DNA of 64,000 nt from sequence record PP886230.1. One strand, written 5' to 3'. This document shows, piece after piece, positions 6,028 through 56,194 of this stretch; position 1 is the first letter of the stretch, and every line of letters begins with the position of its first letter. The notes below the pieces were generated by a model. It was not told where the DNA came from. It made no database searches and saw nothing but the letters and a program-made list of their open reading frames with translations. The translations under genes and the position numbers were made by a program.

Positions 6028-8421
6028 ATGACAACTTTTACCCCACGATGGGATATAAAAGCCGATGCTCGATATATACAAGAAGGACAAGACATTCTTG
6101 TGCGTTTGAGTATCAATAAAGAAAGCACAACGGATGATAGCTATGTATTAAATGAAGATGAATACTTAGAAATGATTCTTAACATACAATGCTTGGATAG
6201 TTCAGGTGCTGTATTTGATCCAGAACCACATTATACTTTTTATGTTGGTAATGACGAAAATACTTTTGTTCCTATTTCAGATGGTACAACTGGTAATAAA
6301 TTAGTAAATGGTAAGCATAAGTGTAAAATCAGCAAAAATGAATTTAACTTATCTGCAAGTACTAATAGTGAAGATGTTTATTTTATAAAAATTCATTGTA
6401 AAAATGATGGAACCTATAATAATACAGAAATTATAAATTTTTATTTACAAGCAGTAAATGTTATGTATTTTGGAAATATTTCACCAAGTGGTGTTCTAGG
6501 ATTAACTGATACATCAATAACATATGATAGTCAAGAAGTTTGGGTTACACCCGGAGTTGAGATTGGTGATGACAAAAAGCTTTATTGTATTGGTGATGTT
6601 GAGTATGGCTCCAACAGTACATTGTTCGTTCAAGGATTTGGAAGAAGACGACCTTTCATTTTGGGTACTGACATGACTACTGATATTACACCTCGTGTCT
6701 TTTTTCCAGCATATCGTTTGATTGACATGGATATTTCTGAAGTTCCAGATAAACATATTACGAATGATTTCGCAGTATTCAAGCCAGCACAATCAACATG
6801 GCCTATTTCTGGTATAAACAAAGAAGTAAAAGTTAATATTCAAAATAGAAATGGTAATTTAATTGACACTGGAATGGTGTTCAACCCAAATGGGCAATTA
6901 TTGCAAACATTTTTATATGACTCAGATGCTTGTGATGCATATTTTAAAGTTGAGATTGTTGATATATTAAGTACATACACCGAAGAAAGTGAAAGGTTTG
7001 CTATCAATCAACGATATAAAGCATATCAAATGTGGGTTTGTCCTGAAGACATAGATACTATATATTCTATTTCAGAAAAACCACTACCCAATCATTTATA
7101 TCAATTAAAAGATAATGTTGTGTATCCATACGTAATTAGTGGTGAATACGATAATGGAACAATTAAGCCCGTTTATGATAGTAGTGATTGGATTGATTTA
7201 GGATATTATGACTCTACTCTTGGTGATAATATCATTGGTATGCAAAAAATGTTCAGGGTTTTGATAAACGCAGAAGAAGGTAATAATATAAACTTTATTA
7301 CTGATAGTGATTTAGGAACCATACATGTTGGTGAATATTTTGGAGACAGTATATATCCTAAAATTGAAACTGATAGCTCTAATCAAGTTTCGTATGTTTT
7401 AGATGGTGGTGATGACATTAGAAAGTATGGGATAGATTTGACACCAGATGGATATCTTGTAGGAACTGCATATGCCAAAAGTATTGATTTTAGTGAAAAT
7501 GATGATATTAAATTATCGTTTTATGTTAAAGCATTTAGTACTGAAGGTGGTGAAGCAAGAAAAATATTTAACCTTAAGATTGTAAGAGGATTCGGACAGA
7601 ATTATTTGAGTGCACATGTATTACCTTCGGTTGCATTTGAGAGAGAATGGTTTAAATGTATAAGTACTTCATCATTCACTAATCAACTATTTTTCCGACA
7701 ATCTGACAATAGATATGGTCTTCAGAAAATACCGAAGATGTTATTGAAAGAAAACTTCCTAAGTCAAACGTATCCATATACTAACCTTTCTGATATCAAG
7801 AAAGTATTGAGAAATAGTATAATTAACCCAAATGGAACTACTATTCCAAATGGAAAATTTAAAATGGTAATGGGTAATTATAAAATAATATCAGCACTTG
7901 ACAATCAAGGTAACTTACAATATGATCTATTATATAGAGAGGTTTTACCTGAAGGTTCTTTAGTATCTGTATCCAAAAATCCACGTCAATATACTCAAAT
8001 CGACAACGGTCAGCTTGGTGAATTATTTGGTTTACGACAAAATATTTTTCAGGCTATTGGTGAAGACACAACCAACTTAGTAAAAGACCCAACCGATTTA
8101 CAAAATCGTGGTCTATACGTTGATGCGATACCAAGTATCAGTGATGAAATGCTTGATACGGTTCCAAGATTTATGAATCACCCATACATTGAAGATGGTA
8201 TACAGAAAAAATTCATGCCTATCATTCCAGTTGCATATTGTCAACCAGGGAAAGGTGAAGCATTTTTCAACACTTTACTTCAGAACAATGAACATGGTAC
8301 AATGGTAGGTGTAGAGTTCGAAATCACATCGGTTGAATTCGGATACTTTTCGCATGAATCAGTGAATTATGTTTCAGATACATTTTTGATTACATTGCAA
8401 AACAATAACATAGGAGGTTAA
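6028..8421 (+). CDS. Large putative virion structural protein (baseplate/tail type)
   Basis: About 797 aa, D/N/G/Y-rich beta-type composition, late-promoter motif upstream; start moved to 6028 (GGAG RBS). Confidence 0.55.
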   Translation: MTTFTPRWDIKADARYIQEGQDILVRLSINKESTTDDSYVLNEDEYLEMILNIQCLDSSGAVFDPEPHYTFYVGNDENTFVPISDGTTGNKLVNGKHKCKISKNEFNLSASTNSEDVYFIKIHCKNDGTYNNTEIINFYLQAVNVMYFGNISPSGVLGLTDTSITYDSQEVWVTPGVEIGDDKKLYCIGDVEYGSNSTLFVQGFGRRRPFILGTDMTTDITPRVFFPAYRLIDMDISEVPDKHITNDFAVFKPAQSTWPISGINKEVKVNIQNRNGNLIDTGMVFNPNGQLLQTFLYDSDACDAYFKVEIVDILSTYTEESERFAINQRYKAYQMWVCPEDIDTIYSISEKPLPNHLYQLKDNVVYPYVISGEYDNGTIKPVYDSSDWIDLGYYDSTLGDNIIGMQKMFRVLINAEEGNNINFITDSDLGTIHVGEYFGDSIYPKIETDSSNQVSYVLDGGDDIRKYGIDLTPDGYLVGTAYAKSIDFSENDDIKLSFYVKAFSTEGGEARKIFNLKIVRGFGQNYLSAHVLPSVAFEREWFKCISTSSFTNQLFFRQSDNRYGLQKIPKMLLKENFLSQTYPYTNLSDIKKVLRNSIINPNGTTIPNGKFKMVMGNYKIISALDNQGNLQYDLLYREVLPEGSLVSVSKNPRQYTQIDNGQLGELFGLRQNIFQAIGEDTTNLVKDPTDLQNRGLYVDAIPSISDEMLDTVPRFMNHPYIEDGIQKKFMPIIPVAYCQPGKGEAFFNTLLQNNEHGTMVGVEFEITSVEFGYFSHESVNYVSDTFLITLQNNNIGG

Positions 8422-36994: not shown

Positions 36995-37330
<336 letters not shown>

Positions 37331-37331
37331 A

Positions 37332-37514
37332 ATGACACACGAAGAATGGATGTCCAAACAGCATAAAGAACATGACTGCTTTGGGAATGGCATTCGTCAG
37401 GTACATTATGATATATTAAGAGATGAAAATCTTTTCAGGTCATATGTTTTGGATACCAGAAAACCCTGGTTTATATGCGAACTGGCATTTAGAAAGTCAA
37501 ATAATCAAAACTAA
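37332..37514 (+). CDS. MTHEEW-family micro-protein 3
   Basis: MTHEEWMSKQHKEHDCFGNGI...WFICELAFRK. Confidence 0.75.
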   Translation: MTHEEWMSKQHKEHDCFGNGIRQVHYDILRDENLFRSYVLDTRKPWFICELAFRKSNNQN

Positions 37515-37530
37515 ACAAGGAATACAAAAA

Positions 37531-37749
37531 ATGGAAACAACTTTATTTGAAGTTATTCAATCATTAAAACCTGAAGATGAGGTTCAAGTACTACTACATG
37601 GTTATCGTGTAAAAGGTACTGTGGTTTTAGTCAATGATACAACATTGGTTATTACAGAAACAAACCCATATGATAGTAATCAACTTGTCAATATCCATAT
37701 CGATATCACTGGAATTATTGGTGTCGGTGTATCTAAAACACTTGCATAA
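37531..37749 (+). CDS. Small hypothetical beta-rich protein
   Basis: AAGGA RBS; start moved to 37531. Confidence 0.65.
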   Translation: METTLFEVIQSLKPEDEVQVLLHGYRVKGTVVLVNDTTLVITETNPYDSNQLVNIHIDITGIIGVGVSKTLA

Positions 37750-37802
37750 ATCATTAATTCATTATATAATGATTATCACTGGTTCTAGATGAGGATAATA
37801 TT

Positions 37803-38075
37803 ATGCATTTTGAAAAATTCAACGTAAATCGTAACACACGCATTGAAGTTCTTTATGAAACTCAAGACACCATTAGTATTCGTACAAGTAGTGGGGATGT
37901 ATATCATGACTGTACGATTGGCTGGGAACAGGGAAGAACGCGTAGTGCAGTATTTGATAATTATCGCTTTTATCAAGGAGACACTACGATTTGGCCTGAA
38001 TACGTAGAAGATATTGCGTTTGAAGATGAACATAAAGATGAATTTATCAAATTTAATCCTCAAACTGAATCATAA
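37803..38075 (+). CDS. Hypothetical protein
   Basis: GAGGA RBS. Confidence 0.7.
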   Translation: MHFEKFNVNRNTRIEVLYETQDTISIRTSSGDVYHDCTIGWEQGRTRSAVFDNYRFYQGDTTIWPEYVEDIAFEDEHKDEFIKFNPQTES

Positions 38076-38080
38076 ATAAT

Positions 38081-38208
<128 letters not shown>

Positions 38209-38212
38209 AAAT

Positions 38213-38314
<102 letters not shown>

Positions 38315-38318
38315 AACC

Positions 38319-38479
38319 ATGACGCATGAAGAATGGATGAATGACATTAATTTTAGATATGCAGGTTTCGGTAACTGGAGAAAGTATCATTGGGAAATCA
38401 TGTCAGACCCAGCAGAATACGATAAACTTATAAACCATGAAGCGTATCCGTGGTTCTTTATTGAAATAATGGTACGAAC

Positions 38480-38483
<4 letters not shown>
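38319..38483 (+). CDS. MTHEEW-family micro-protein 4 (not in ORF track)
   Basis: 54 aa MTHEEWMNDINFRYAGFGNW...PWFFIEIMVRT. Confidence 0.7.
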
Positions 38484-38645
<162 letters not shown>

Positions 38646-38653
38646 AAAAAAAG

Positions 38654-39062
<409 letters not shown>

Positions 39063-39067
<5 letters not shown>

Positions 39068-39085
39068 CTAAATAATTCAGTACTG
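39063..39085 (+). repeat. 23-bp promoter repeat copy 2 (one mismatch, no -10)
   Basis: CTTGACTAAATAATTCAGTACTG followed by GAGGA and a 9-codon ORF (39097-39126). Confidence 0.8.
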
Positions 39086-39124
39086 AGGATATTAATATGT
39101 TTAAAGATGAACGTCCAGATTTGT

Positions 39125-39162
<38 letters not shown>

Positions 39163-39168
39163 GAATTC

Positions 39169-39510
39169 CACAATCAGACGTATATGGTGTAAGTTACGTC
39201 GATGCAATCCAGAACAAGATCTCTGGTACTCTAGGAAGTGGTGAATGTTAACCTAGACGGGTTTGATAATTGGACGATAGGCAATTATTACTTGACTAGC
39301 AGGTTTAAACTAGAGGTGACTATCCTTCACCAAACTGGAAAACCGGATGGACTTTTATTTAAAAGGGTAAGGCGTGGAAATATGTTTACAGTAGTTGCTT
39401 TTAGTATCCTGTACGCCCCACGTCAAGGTAGCCGAAAGGCAAGTTAAAACGGGTGGTTATAAAGCTGAATTAACAGCGACGTTTAAAAGCGTCACCATCC
39501 ATTTTTTTTT
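39169..39510 (+). ncRNA. Candidate structured ncRNA, about 340 nt, family unknown
   Basis: Own consensus promoter, at least 8 stems incl. GCC-GAAA-GGC tetraloop, 9-T end; GC richer than flanks. Confidence 0.7.
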
Positions 39511-39526
39511 AATTAAAGTTGGTGAT

Positions 39527-40164
<638 letters not shown>

Positions 40165-40165
40165 T

Positions 40166-40335
<170 letters not shown>

Positions 40336-40358
40336 CGAAATTACAATAGGAAATTAAA

Positions 40359-40544
40359 ATGCAACTTTTAATTCTTTCAATATTGTATATTATTATAATG
40401 GTTCCGATATCAATACGTTTAATTACAGTTGAACGATTTTTATCGAAACATGGAAATAGATCTATGATCTTTGTACCAATTGGGCTTATATTGTTTGGTA
40501 TTTTTGCATTTATAATGGGAATTAACGCTACATTCATTTCATAG
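40359..40544 (+). CDS. Small membrane protein
   Basis: Two TM helices; AGGA RBS. Confidence 0.65.
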   Translation: MQLLILSILYIIIMVPISIRLITVERFLSKHGNRSMIFVPIGLILFGIFAFIMGINATFIS

Positions 40545-40553
40545 GAAACAAAT

Positions 40554-40811
<258 letters not shown>

Positions 40812-40814
40812 CTA

Positions 40815-41015
40815 ATGTCAAAATTTATTAACCGTAAGAAAAGAAAAAAACGTTCTAAAGAAGAAATTCTTCAGTTAATTAAACAAAACAAGAAAGAATT
40901 GATACTTGATGAATATGTTTTCCAATACGGAATGAAAAGTGGTTTAGTGAAAGAATGTAATAATAAGTACAGTACTGAGCATTTTGATCTTATTAAAAAT
41001 ATTCTTTTAAAATAA
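40815..41015 (+). CDS. Basic hypothetical protein
   Basis: AAGGA RBS; RKKRKKR stretch. Confidence 0.6.
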   Translation: MSKFINRKKRKKRSKEEILQLIKQNKKELILDEYVFQYGMKSGLVKECNNKYSTEHFDLIKNILLK

Positions 41016-41183
41016 AAGTATTTTTTGGATTAATTATGAGATTAACACTTGAAGAAAAAGAAGCTATTCGAGTACTGGTACGGTAAAAAGAAATTGACAA
41101 AATATGTCATTTCACCTAAACTACGTGGTAAGACTTCACTTGGTGTATTCAACGCCGCAGACTTAAACTACTAGCGGGTATTA

Positions 41184-41734
<551 letters not shown>

Positions 41735-41736
41735 TA

Positions 41737-41793
<57 letters not shown>

Positions 41794-41794
41794 A

Positions 41795-41826
<32 letters not shown>

Positions 41827-41878
41827 TACCAAGCAGCTTGAAGAACTTTGTAGTGCTGCACCTATGCCGACTCTTGGC

Positions 41879-41979
<101 letters not shown>

Positions 41980-41991
41980 TATCTTACTTCT

Positions 41992-42081
<90 letters not shown>

Positions 42082-53351: not shown

Positions 53352-54317
53352 GTGAAAAAGCTTGATTTAAATACAATTGCCGAAGAAGTTCTGGATGAAT
53401 GTTTTGCTAATGAAGAAGTCAACACACTAGAAGCCTTAGATTTCGTTGAAGATAAAGATGATAATGAAGGTAAAGTACAAAGCAGTTTCAAATATAATAT
53501 TACACTTAAGCGACCACCAAATGTTTCCAATGAAGATCTAATTCGTGATATTCAAGCTGGTATCAATGTAAAGAAAAACACTGAACTGTTAGTTCGTTAC
53601 AATTATGGACTGATTATTGATGTAGCAAGTAAATGTACTTGTTATATCCCATTTGAAGATAAGATTTCATATGGTGTTGAGGGGTTCATGAGAGCACTAA
53701 AAACCTTTGATCTTAATAAGAATGTTAAGTTCATTACCTATGCTTCTTCTAGTATTTACATGACAGTCTATAACGAAAGTTCTGACGCTAACTATATGGT
53801 ACACTTCCCACGTTATATGAGTGTTCATAAGATCAAAGTAAAAAGATTCTGCCAGGAATATATGCGTAAACATGGTGTTCGCCCAACACCTGAAATAATC
53901 TCAGAGGGTACTGGGATTGAGATTCAGCATGTTAATAATTGTTTGTTATTTCAAAGCGAATACACTTCGCTGGATGCACCATTAGACGGTGTTACAGATG
54001 GTACATTAGGTGACATTATTCATTCACCTGCTTCTGATTTTAACCTCAATGTTGATAGTATCCGTGCACCTTTGCGTTATGCTATCAATGAACTGACCAA
54101 CGAATTGAGTACTAAAGAACGTGAGATTATCCAGCGTGTTCATGGTCTAGGTGAATATGAACCTGAAACGCTTCGTGAGATTGCTGATAATGGTTTTGTT
54201 GATGATAATGGAAAATATGTTAAATCCCGTTCATCAATACATCGAAAGTACAGTGAAGCTATGCAAAAGCTTAAGAAGTTAGTACTTGCAAAAGGGTACG
54301 AATACGAAGATTTCTAA
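53352..54317 (+). CDS. RNA polymerase sigma70-family factor (RpoD/RpoS/RpoH-like, regions 2-4)
   Basis: LLVRYNYGLI, EDKISYGVEGFMRALKTFD...KFITYA, SLDAPL, LSTKEREII, TLREIA, SRSSIHR; AGGAG RBS, GTG start. Confidence 0.9.
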   Translation: MKKLDLNTIAEEVLDECFANEEVNTLEALDFVEDKDDNEGKVQSSFKYNITLKRPPNVSNEDLIRDIQAGINVKKNTELLVRYNYGLIIDVASKCTCYIPFEDKISYGVEGFMRALKTFDLNKNVKFITYASSSIYMTVYNESSDANYMVHFPRYMSVHKIKVKRFCQEYMRKHGVRPTPEIISEGTGIEIQHVNNCLLFQSEYTSLDAPLDGVTDGTLGDIIHSPASDFNLNVDSIRAPLRYAINELTNELSTKEREIIQRVHGLGEYEPETLREIADNGFVDDNGKYVKSRSSIHRKYSEAMQKLKKLVLAKGYEYEDF

Positions 54318-54322
54318 AGAAC

Positions 54323-54350
54323 AAGGGTTGGCTTATGCCAACCTTTTTTT
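54323..54350 (+). terminator. Intrinsic terminator
   Basis: AAGGGTTGGC-ttat-GCCAACCTT-TTTTT. Confidence 0.8.
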
Positions 54351-54383
54351 ATGGGATGAAGTAAAAGTTTGTGATATAATTAT

Positions 54384-54835
54384 CTTGTACAATTCTGTTG
54401 GCATGATATTCATGTACCTGATCCACTCGAAAACGTAGAGGGCAGTTGAGCAGTCCGACAGTGCGAACAGCAAAAGAAACCCGTTAGATGTGGGCATAGT
54501 TTGAACCCCTCACGGCAATGCGGCTGTATAAAGAACCACGTTAGGATAGCTGGTGGTTCCTTGATAGACATATAAGGATAACACCTTACGAATTATCTAA
54601 GGGAGAGTTATCGAATTTTGTACAGGAAAGTTGCGTCCAAAATTTGAGTACTCACATTAAGTATTTGATTGCATAGATACTTAATGAAGATACACTATGT
54701 TTAAAAGTGTAGACCGTCATATGAAACTGAAGTAGAGAGAAACAGGATGACCCGCTTTCGCACTCTTTATGAGTAATCTTCAATGCAATAGCTCTGATAC
54801 CATCAGCGTCAAATTTCCCTCCTTGTGGGGGGAAG
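54384..54835 (+). ncRNA. Candidate structured ncRNA, about 450 nt, family unknown
   Basis: Extended -10 TGaTATAAT at 54372-54380, no + strand ORF, at least 7 stems incl. long-range 54384-95/54613-26. Confidence 0.65.
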
Positions 54836-54874
54836 AAAAATCCCTTCCTCAAATCCCGTCAATATTAAAAGTCC

Positions 54875-54903
54875 TTGACAGTTATTAATCATTCGCGTAG
54901 AAT
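54875..54903 (+). promoter_or_regulatory. sigma70 promoter
   Basis: TTGACA-17 bp-TAGAAT. Confidence 0.75.
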
Positions 54904-54967
54904 ACGTAGTATTAGAAGCGAACAGACATCTCGAAGAGATGGATGATTAACCATTAAGGAATATCAA

Positions 54968-55177
54968 ATGAATTCAGTAATCTTTTTAGTAGTCGCTTTC
55001 TCTGTTAATTCCGGTGTACAAATAACCCCAATGAATTCCATGAATCAATGCATAGCAGTACGTGATAGTACATACGAACAAGTAAACAAAGATATTTGGA
55101 TTACAGTTAGTAAAGAACAAATGTGGTGTTACAATAGTAATACTAACACAAAGCTTATTGTAGGACAAACTCAATGA
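54968..55177 (+). CDS. Small secreted/membrane hypothetical protein
   Basis: Hydrophobic N-terminus, two Cys; TAAGGA RBS. Confidence 0.7.
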   Translation: MNSVIFLVVAFSVNSGVQITPMNSMNQCIAVRDSTYEQVNKDIWITVSKEQMWCYNSNTNTKLIVGQTQ

Positions 55178-55405: not shown

Positions 55406-56194
55406 ATGAGCACTATAGATGAACTGATTCGACGGAATTCAAAATATTACCAACCATCAGAAATTGTAGGTAACATTACCAAATCAGAGTTTGGTCCAAA
55501 TACTCGAAAACTCATTCATGTAATGTCACGTGATGGCTTTAAATGTGATTGTTGCGGTGAATCTAATGTAGTATTCACTTTACACAAGCACAGTACTAAA
55601 GATCGTTATAAATTCAGACCTTATGTACTTAAAGGGAAACGCCTTGTACGCATGACGTTAGACCATAATGTACTGGACTGTCTTCAGGGCGGTAATGATA
55701 AAGAGAACATGACTGCACTGTGTGAAGATTGTAACGCATTACGCCAGCATAAGTTTGCTGAATACAGTGAGTTTAAACACTGGTATCATAACGCGGATCG
55801 TTCAATCGAGCCTGACGTTAACTACTGCTTCATTGAGTACATTAAGAATGCCAAAGATACATACATTCTTAAATCAATGTCACCTATTACCGTGTTTCCT
55901 GAGAACCTATTCACTACATTAAAGAATAGTTTTATTGTGGGTGATATTGATGCATTCAAGTATTTTGACAAAGGTGCAAAACATTTTGAAATTCAATGTC
56001 TTAGTACTGCACTATGTGAACTCATTAAAATTTACATAAAAGAGTATTTGGGTATTGACAATGTACGTGTACCAGAGTATACTTTTTCTATTGAATTCGA
56101 TTGTGAATCAATCAAAGAGTTTGGAATTCTTTTCAATAAACAAATAGAACTTGCAATTCAAAACGAAATCAAGTACTATACTACTAACATTTAA
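55406..56194 (+). CDS. HNH endonuclease with C-terminal extension
   Basis: RDGFKCDCCG...TLDH...GGNDKENMTALCEDCN. Confidence 0.8.
   Translation: MSTIDELIRRNSKYYQPSEIVGNITKSEFGPNTRKLIHVMSRDGFKCDCCGESNVVFTLHKHSTKDRYKFRPYVLKGKRLVRMTLDHNVLDCLQGGNDKENMTALCEDCNALRQHKFAEYSEFKHWYHNADRSIEPDVNYCFIEYIKNAKDTYILKSMSPITVFPENLFTTLKNSFIVGDIDAFKYFDKGAKHFEIQCLSTALCELIKIYIKEYLGIDNVRVPEYTFSIEFDCESIKEFGILFNKQIELAIQNEIKYYTTNI

Follow-up and report, generated by a model that had tools for sequence, protein, structure and literature searches.

The gene-free gap at positions 54318-54967 of the window (the whole analysed stretch of DNA, 64,000 nucleotides of record PP886230.1) is best read, on comparative sequence analysis, as an independently transcribed gene for a structured non-coding RNA of a new family. 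We assign a probability of roughly 0.5 to the more specific reading that the gap is a gene for a ~430-480-nt non-coding RNA that acts in trans through its fold and is one of four paralogues. It is rather probable that the RNA belongs to an undescribed triple-pseudoknotted class of Rak2-like jumbo phages with four to five position-fixed paralogues; these would serve in the replication phase as a new ribozyme or RNP core, or else would be RNA-defined replication origins. The first-pass annotation had proposed a large structured non-coding RNA at this site. This proposal is strongly supported by conservation, by covariation, by a promoter of its own and by the lack of a conserved open reading frame (ORF).

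Layout of the gap

The source of the window is a jumbo coliphage of the genus Asteriusvirus, similar to 121Q and PBECO4; the Rak2-like jumbo myoviruses to which it belongs have genomes of ~350 kb. BLAST searches against phage genomes showed 100% identity of the stretch with Escherichia phages vB_EcoM_E9.1 and JP4 and ~99% identity with 121Q, PBECO4, phAPEC6 and G17. The ~600 bp without a plus-strand ORF that the first-pass annotation had described behind the sigma-gene terminator are indeed present, and the gap contains no plus-strand ORF of at least 50 aa. First comes the terminator and then the extended -10 promoter; the structured RNA is followed by a 3′ G-hairpin and its tail (to ~54862), and a separate promoter comes last (Table 1). 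The terminator, which is also annotated as such in G17 and UE-S1, is predicted to insulate the RNA unit from transcription upstream. The extended -10 element noted earlier lies within TGTGATATAAT (54370-54380). It is conserved upstream of every family member, each of which has the same promoter arrangement. The separate promoter is predicted to serve the first downstream ORF (54968-55177) and, as judged from its sequence and position, marks the end of the RNA unit. An analogous TTGAC promoter, read by eye, also trails the E-group copies.

The region was reported to be richer in GC than its flanks, and we found values of 0.40-0.455 over 54300-54599 against ~0.30-0.34 in most flanking windows. 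The single-sequence fold has an MFE z-score of -2.0, which is equalled by 3 of 100 shuffles and is modest alone. Neither a lack of conservation nor a folding energy no better than that of shuffles, both named at the outset as grounds for rejecting the RNA, was found. Further downstream, a 262-aa ORF (55406-56194) is HNH-endonuclease-like in the G17 annotation, and its weak homologues lie 3-4 kb downstream of E-group RNA copies in other genera.

Table 1. Features of the RNA gene and its surroundings (window positions unless 121Q is given)
Feature	Position	Strand	Remarks
RpoD-like sigma gene	53352-54317	+	directly upstream of the RNA gap
Intrinsic terminator of the sigma gene	54323-54346	+	10-bp stem, then T run
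Promoter of the RNA	54352-54380	+	-35-like TGGGATG (54352-58), 13-nt spacer, extended -10 TGATATAAT (54372-80)
Structured RNA core	~54387-54812	+	putative 5′ end ~7 nt after the -10; runs through first CGUCAA repeat (R1)
P1	54395-401/54455-461	+	95.8% paired, 7/8 pairs covary; encloses P2 and P3
P2	54402-06/54410-14	+	7/7 pairs covary
P3	54418-28/54438-45	+	6/8 pairs covary; conserved 9-nt loop
Conserved joiner	54446-54	+	consensus AGAUGAG; UUGAG in copy A
P4	54467-71/54523-27	+	98% paired, 4/5 covary; encloses P5 and P6
P5	54481-84/54512-15	+	99% paired
P6	54492-94/54506-08	+	conserved CAUAGUUUG loop; 55% paired overall, holds only in the insertion-free subfamily
P7 hairpin	54533-38/54554-59	+	98.4% paired, 5/6 pairs covary
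P8	54573-77/54584-88	+	H-type pseudoknot with P9; 99.2% paired, 3/4 covary
P9	54578-82/54607-11	+	H-type pseudoknot with P8; 68% paired, 5/5 covary; module absent in some members
AAGGGAG within UAAGGGAG	54598-54605	+	unpaired, SD-like, in the long loop of the P8/P9 pseudoknot
Movable module	54613-54654	+	stem 54614-20/54638-44, conserved 11-nt loop, then small hairpin
P10	54655-61/54680-86 and 54663-67/54674-78	+	first part 6/6 pairs covary; second part 96% paired
PK-A	54668-73 (P10 loop) with 54784-89	+	99.5% paired, 5/6 covary
P11 hairpin	54691-96/54706-11	+	92% paired, 2/3 pairs covary
PK-B	54716-20/54747-51	+	100% paired, 3/5 covary
P13	54728-32/54778-82	+	100% paired, 4/5 covary
P14	54735-39/54755-59	+	100% paired, 4/5 covary
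P15	54762-65/54771-74	+	3′ core (54716-54789)
3′ module	54800-54862	+	repeat R1, G-hairpin P17, repeat R2; sequence conserved without compensatory change
Repeat R1 CGUCAA	54807-12	+
G-hairpin P17, TTCCCTCC/GGGGGGAA	54815-22/54827-34	+	variation on one side only; G6 run invariant
Repeat R2 CAAAUCCCGUCAA	54850-62	+	family consensus CAAAYCNCGUCAR
Separate sigma-70-type promoter	54875-54903	+	TTGACA, 17 nt, TAGAAT; 11/12 consensus matches
Copy A	~90 kb in 121Q	+	copy in the window, after the sigma gene
Copy B	~193 kb in 121Q	+
Copy C	~247 kb in 121Q	+
Copy D	~327 kb in 121Q	+	amid minus-strand genes: endonuclease VII, baseplate-hub operon

The promoter of the RNA belongs to a general 121Q class, which combines a -35 of TG(G/A)GAC or TGAAAC with an extended -10. 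This class is also found before tRNA-Ser (window 38080), before the genes for SSB, primase, topoisomerase and DNA polymerase, and before the late sigma gene. Genome-wide, the pattern TG(G/A)GACA-N13-TGnTATAAT (for example at window 2450 and 38080) precedes tRNA, replication and late-sigma genes, and the phage RpoD-like sigma factor may recognise it. The class was named the ‘divergent RpoD-like’ promoter in CBB, where it has a -35 of TGAAACG and stands before DNA-synthesis genes (PMC5259590). The B-group copies have a terminator-like hairpin and a U6 tract between the -10 element and P1 (L016 43742-43803; L010 ~7985-8037), and these may act as a 5′ stabiliser or as an attenuator.

The tRNA cluster of the window (37017-42071) contains six tRNAs (Gly, two Ser, Met, Asn and Thr) according to ARAGORN. 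Rfam gave an extra, borderline tRNA-like match there at 38213-38291 (29.3 bits) and missed the tRNA-Gly at 37017. The ~300 nt after 38291 are without an ORF.

Covariation and the fold

Helices were located by a covariation scan and by hand, and were then counted on two alignments built by software from 33 distinct sequences. Some 17 helices are supported by covariation, along with three pseudoknots (P8/P9, PK-A and PK-B), and they are arranged in two domains. For the 46 pairs counted in the 5′ domain, 88.0% of the cells are paired (slid controls: 32-46%), both sides changed in 34 pairs, and the covariation score is 0.42 (0.07-0.13 in the controls). The 3′ domain, with 74 pairs counted, has 89.6% of the cells paired (37-46%), 44 pairs changed on both sides and a score of 0.40 (0.06-0.11). 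The observed score was reached in 0 of 500 shuffles for each domain; together, 78 of 120 pairs show changes on both sides. The alignments of paralogues and orthologues contain invariant single-stranded blocks between stems that change by compensation. The invariant unpaired stretches are the P3 loop, the AGAUGAG joiner, AAAGAAACC, GAUAGACAUAUAAG, AAGGGAG and ACCCGC. The AAGGGAG heptamer is the same in all 33 sequences, and the octamer that contains it serves elsewhere as the ribosome-binding site of ordinary genes in the same phage.

The copy in the window has all the features by which family members were recognised. Covariance model R1, which represents the 5′ domain, matches it at full model length (54387-54614, 210.8 bits, E 9e-56), with the P1-P8 domain and its conserved joiners. 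On the 3′ side (54655-54862) it has PK-A, PK-B, P13-P15 and the CGUCAR repeats that flank the G6 hairpin.

Several stems that had been proposed from the single sequence are part of this fold. GAACCAC/GTGGTTC is P7, TACACT/AGTGTA is P11 and the 12-bp stem 54655-66/54675-86 is P10, all of them supported by covariation; GATAAC/GTTATC is P9, with covariation support where the module is present. Other proposals did not survive the comparison. A long-range helix had been drawn between 54384-95 and 54613-26. The 5′ leader, however, has no consistent partner across members (duplex z ~0), and 54614-20 forms a local stem with 54638-44. The nested CCTTA/TAAGG pairing shows zero compensatory changes and breaks where CCUUA varies; the partner of CCUUA is the upstream UAAGG at 54573-77 (99% paired, 3/4 pairs covary), which is the 5′ strand of P8. 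CTGAT/ATCAG is 75% paired with no both-sided change and has no comparative support. All three pseudoknots and the 5′ P1-P6 architecture had been missed. ‘One or two’ RNAs had been considered; we find one and not two, since PK-A ties in what was taken for a second part. This pseudoknot covaries through five different sequence combinations, and its partner strand is 110 nt downstream.

In the movable module, complementarity of the stem is kept by eye (AAUUUUG/CAAAAUU vs AAAUUUG/CAAAUUU), with a formal count of 1/5 pairs changed on both sides. The module is found in relatives between P9 and P10, in the P15 loop, at both places or at neither. Within 121Q, this ~35-nt hairpin (window 54613-54648; loop AAnAnAGUUGC) occupies both places in copy C and neither in copy D.

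The 3′ module and the RNA ends

The 3′ module differs in kind from the domains before it. The first-pass stem TTCCCTCC/GGGGGGAA does pair and corresponds to P17, but its one-sided variation includes no compensatory change. In the 121Q genome the motifs of this module occur only at the four RNA loci. A canonical intrinsic terminator with covarying stems is present right after the first CGUCAR repeat in 14 of 33 members, which suggests that the functional RNA ends there. No canonical terminator was found after the core of copy A. The G-hairpin and the second repeat stay conserved even behind the terminator.

The repeats R1 and R2 change together within single elements and not per genome (UUGUCAG twice, GCGUCAG twice, CUUCAAG twice and so on). 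This was seen at window 54800-54862 and at the equivalent places in L003, L027, L033, L023, L051 and L056. A search for a third strand that pairs with both CGUCAR repeats gave none that covaries. A DRT2-like concatemeric ORF built from the R1-R2 unit was rejected, as the unit lengths modulo 3 are 0, 1 and 2 in 10, 15 and 8 members. The unit shows no 3-nt periodicity and no conserved stop-free frame.

Copies, relatives and synteny

There are four copies of the RNA in 121Q, all on the plus strand and each in its own CDS-free gap of ~600 nt (counted over the window and the rest of the 121Q genome; nhmmer E 1e-37 to 2e-58). Covariance model R1 finds exactly these four (186-232 bits) and a divergent copy in RaK2 (100 bits), which is syntenic with copy B; the next best match has 13.6 bits. 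Copy D lies amid minus-strand genes. It must therefore be an independent unit and cannot be the leader of a neighbouring gene.

The RNA core (~54417-54870) has ~70% nucleotide identity in distant genera by BLAST against phage genomes. The relatives that carry it are Eneladusvirus BF, Erwinia phages, CBB, GAP32, Yersinia fHe-Yen9-04, the Salmonella Munch/7t3 group and Xanthomonas XbC2, and BLAST places the core at three to five sites per distant genome. Rak2-like jumbo-phage genomes and contigs together account for more than 60 family members. Motif scans gave 35 loci in IMG/VR and 37 in metagenomes, and nhmmer confirmed 34 of the 37 metagenome loci. Four hits were discarded as chance pattern matches: the IMG/VR giant-virus locus L011, L057 in a Pirellulaceae MAG, and the metagenome loci L061 and L090. 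When 185,579 bacterial and archaeal species (one genome each) were scanned for the motif, a single match came up; nhmmer did not confirm it, so that no member was found.

The copies occupy syntenic positions across genera (BF, CBB, GAP32, fHe-Yen9-04, RaK2 and metagenomic jumbo-phage contigs). Outside Asteriusvirus they cluster by genomic position, which argues for ancient duplications; within Asteriusvirus, copies A, C and D group together. Copy A of UE-S1 is a hybrid. Its 5′ domain is near-identical to that of 121Q copy D (153/158 positions; L001 2589-2750 vs L019 27643-27800), and its 3′ domain matches copy A of the window. This indicates gene conversion between paralogues, and such exchange of domains argues that the copies are biochemically equivalent.

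The neighbourhoods differ between the copy groups. A 175-206-aa ORF, a methylase and a cytidylyltransferase always come after copy B; copy D is downstream of sbcCD homologues, and the A/E group is 0.05-3.9 kb downstream of the sigma gene. When neighbour genes were compared across the copy groups, no protein family was found that accompanies all of them. The first-pass annotation had suggested checking synteny with the sigma gene. In other genera (BF, Yen9-04 and one UViG) a sigma homologue is found 1.6-3.9 kb upstream of the RNA; this is ordinary backbone synteny of one copy in four or five and not functional pairing.

Two observations on annotation may be added. A 2-kb stretch of 121Q without an annotated CDS (135194-137161, i.e. 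L015 36194-38161, outside the window) contains no RNA copy according to covariance model R1. In the GenBank entries of E9.1, JP4, the SD-series Salmonella phages, GAP32 and fHe-Yen9-04, one to six ‘hypothetical proteins’ are annotated inside the RNA gene and are most likely spurious calls; some annotations leave the RNA gaps empty.

Coding potential and known RNA families

No conserved ORF was found in the RNA, where stop-free stretches differ in strand and length between members. A frame of 7-9 codons after the SD-like AAGGGAG was rejected: it is present in some members only, its differences are non-synonymous and no consistent ORF exists there. The Rfam search that had been recommended was run with version 15. 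No match within the RNA was obtained for copy A, at the gathering threshold or at E up to 10, or for seven relatives at E up to 1; the only matches were terminator-like or due to chance and lay outside the RNA. The families without a match include 6S, RNase P, tmRNA, group I/II introns, GOLLD and ROOL, the last two of which are presumably represented in the Rfam 15 library.

It is highly improbable that the RNA is a remnant or unusual form of a known element, be it a group I/II intron, RNase P RNA, tmRNA, the template RNA of a reverse transcriptase or a short protein gene. Introns and homing endonucleases abound in T4-like genomes, a few stretches look to the eye like RNase P motifs, and the identical repeats R1 and R2 around a segment recall template-jumping RNAs. 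These readings are largely refuted by Rfam, ARAGORN, the layout of the flanks, the R1-R2 periodicity and the ORF tests. An intron is contradicted by the flanks, which are a terminator and promoters and not exons, by the intergenic position of all four copies and by the Rfam result. RNase P and tmRNA likewise have no Rfam match, and the 5′ and 3′ ends of the RNA do not pair. The RNase P-like letters sit in helix P4, which covaries away from them, and they match no model. ARAGORN detected no tmRNA in the window.

We found no paper that describes this RNA element. The CBB genome paper (PMC5259590) does not mention non-coding regions, and two ncRNA-mining preprints of 2026 do not mention jumbo phages.

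Possible functions

We infer a free-standing RNA gene from its own promoter, the insulation on both sides, the conserved pseudoknotted fold, the independence from neighbours and the exchangeability of domains. The promoter is of the class that also drives tRNA and DNA-replication genes, and the fold consists of two domains held by three pseudoknots. The RNA would be released as a stable molecule. For ~40% of the family its 3′ end is predicted at the CGUCAR repeat and terminator; the other members, copy A among them, would end at the G-hairpin or further downstream. Such an RNA may act in trans as a protein-binding scaffold or as a catalytic RNA in an early-to-middle, replication-phase programme, with the invariant loops as putative contact surfaces. 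Against this stand the four to five dispersed copies, at fixed syntenic positions since before the genera split, and the lack of a partner protein consistently encoded beside them. The 3′ hairpin and tail, conserved even behind a terminator, also speak against a simple RNA gene. The main weakness of a role in trans is that a cis-acting element accounts better for two findings, namely several copies dispersed at fixed positions and a 3′ module with DNA-like conservation. An RNA-primed origin is the most appealing of the cis-acting readings, ahead of a transcription element.

We consider a cis-acting origin of replication possible, if doubtful. As for ColE1 RNA II and the T4 origins ori(uvsY) and ori(34), the folded transcript would form a persistent RNA-DNA hybrid ~430-500 nt downstream, at the G6/C-run hairpin, and would prime the leading strand; each of the four to five copies would be one origin of the 350-kb genome. 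The RNA shares with ColE1 RNA II and the T4 origin transcripts that the transcript is folded, that its promoter stands ~0.5 kb before a fixed site and that a G-run is found towards the 3′ end. A set of copies scattered over the genome would be sensible for origins, and those of 121Q are spread out (~90, 193, 247 and 327 kb) in one orientation; synteny shows their positions to be constant across genera. Promoters of the same class stand before DNA-synthesis genes (PMC5259590). The distance from the start to the sequence-invariant GC hairpin with its G6 run is constant, this hairpin lacks RNA-type compensatory change and occurs nowhere else in the genome, and the 3′ module is conserved behind terminators as a DNA-level site would be. 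However, the fold is far more elaborate than in these systems, and known R-loop origins do not need three pseudoknots with invariant loops. In 14 of 33 members the terminator would also stop transcription before the G-hairpin is reached. A simple consensus scan found no minus-strand promoter-like site in 54200-55100, i.e. no ColE1-type antisense promoter for an RNA I-like regulator of copy A, and neither an AT-rich unwinding element nor iterons were noted. A transcription element in cis is unlikely. Here the nascent RNA, or the 3′ hairpin with its tail, would modify RNA polymerase as in HK022 put or rrn boxB-boxA antitermination, or the RNA would be a very large leader or riboswitch that controls read-through. 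Its position directly behind a promoter and along the main gene flow would suit this, as would the several copies per genome (compare putL and putR), the 3′ hairpin with a conserved single-stranded tail, and the B-group hairpin and U-tract between -10 and P1. In 14 of 33 members the folded core is directly followed by a terminator, a layout like that of an expression platform, and the hairpin followed by CUCAACAAAU loosely recalls rrnB boxB-boxA by eye. The similarity to boxA is nevertheless weak, as the stretch is without the U-run of a real boxA, and the RNA is about six times larger than put or boxB-boxA and far larger than any known antitermination RNA. Copy A and the E-group copies are followed by a strong promoter of their own, so that the genes downstream do not depend on read-through. 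Moreover, copy D faces convergent genes, and the downstream genes differ between copies.

The first-pass annotation had speculated about a 6S-like RNA that binds the RNA polymerase holoenzyme and is tied to the adjacent phage sigma factor. We regard this as very improbable. The RNA shares with 6S its non-coding nature and, for copy A, the place beside a sigma factor gene in Asteriusvirus; in BF, Yen9-04 and one UViG the neighbourhood is looser (1.6-3.9 kb). 6S consists of one long, irregular hairpin (~180 nt) whose central bubble resembles an open promoter. In contrast, the RNA described here has a multi-domain pseudoknotted fold that is not an open-promoter mimic. It also differs in size and copy number and matched no 6S model (copy A, E up to 10; seven relatives, E up to 1), and three of the four paralogues are far from the sigma gene. 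If the TGAAAC-type -35 is recognised by the phage sigma factor, the RNA would rank as a product of this factor and not as its partner.

Comparison with other large phage RNAs

Few large RNAs are known to have so much conserved tertiary-type structure, and most of these have proved to be ribozymes, RNP cores or RNA assemblies. The multi-copy, position-fixed layout raises the question of cis action (origins or transcription control of a 350-kb genome) versus action in trans. If the copies are origins, structured origin RNAs would be seen in a T4-related phage for the first time. The carriers 121Q, PBECO4, phAPEC6 and G17 are culturable coliphages that grow on E. coli, so that genetics and structural work are directly feasible. 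The several paralogues in each of many genomes make the family a rich natural data set.

The related jumbo phage PA5oct has two RNA-seq-defined lncRNAs of 450-620 nt in ORF-free gaps, ncRNA002 and ncRNA004 (PMC7318152). Like copy D, ncRNA004 is on the plus strand between minus-strand genes, and it ends in a C-run/G-run hairpin. This 3′ end (L040 1386-1419), with CUC...CCCGA-AUAU after the hairpin, recalls P17 and its tail with a non-significant E of 1.3. The PA5oct phage belongs to the same wider clade, but its lncRNAs have no detectable homology with the RNA described here (nhmmer E of at least 1.3; nothing above 8.8 bits with the covariance model, filters off). A tblastx comparison of the flanks found no flanking genes shared with the RNA copies.

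GOLLD and ROOL are large, ornate non-coding RNAs associated with phages or prophages, from Lactobacillales or rumen samples. The jumbo-phage RNA resembles them in its length of several hundred nucleotides, its many covarying helices and pseudoknots, and its occurrence as a free-standing phage gene with no obligatory protein neighbour. It differs from them in having no match in Rfam 15, in its carriers, which are Gram-negative jumbo myoviruses, and in its four to five diverged, syntenically fixed copies per genome.
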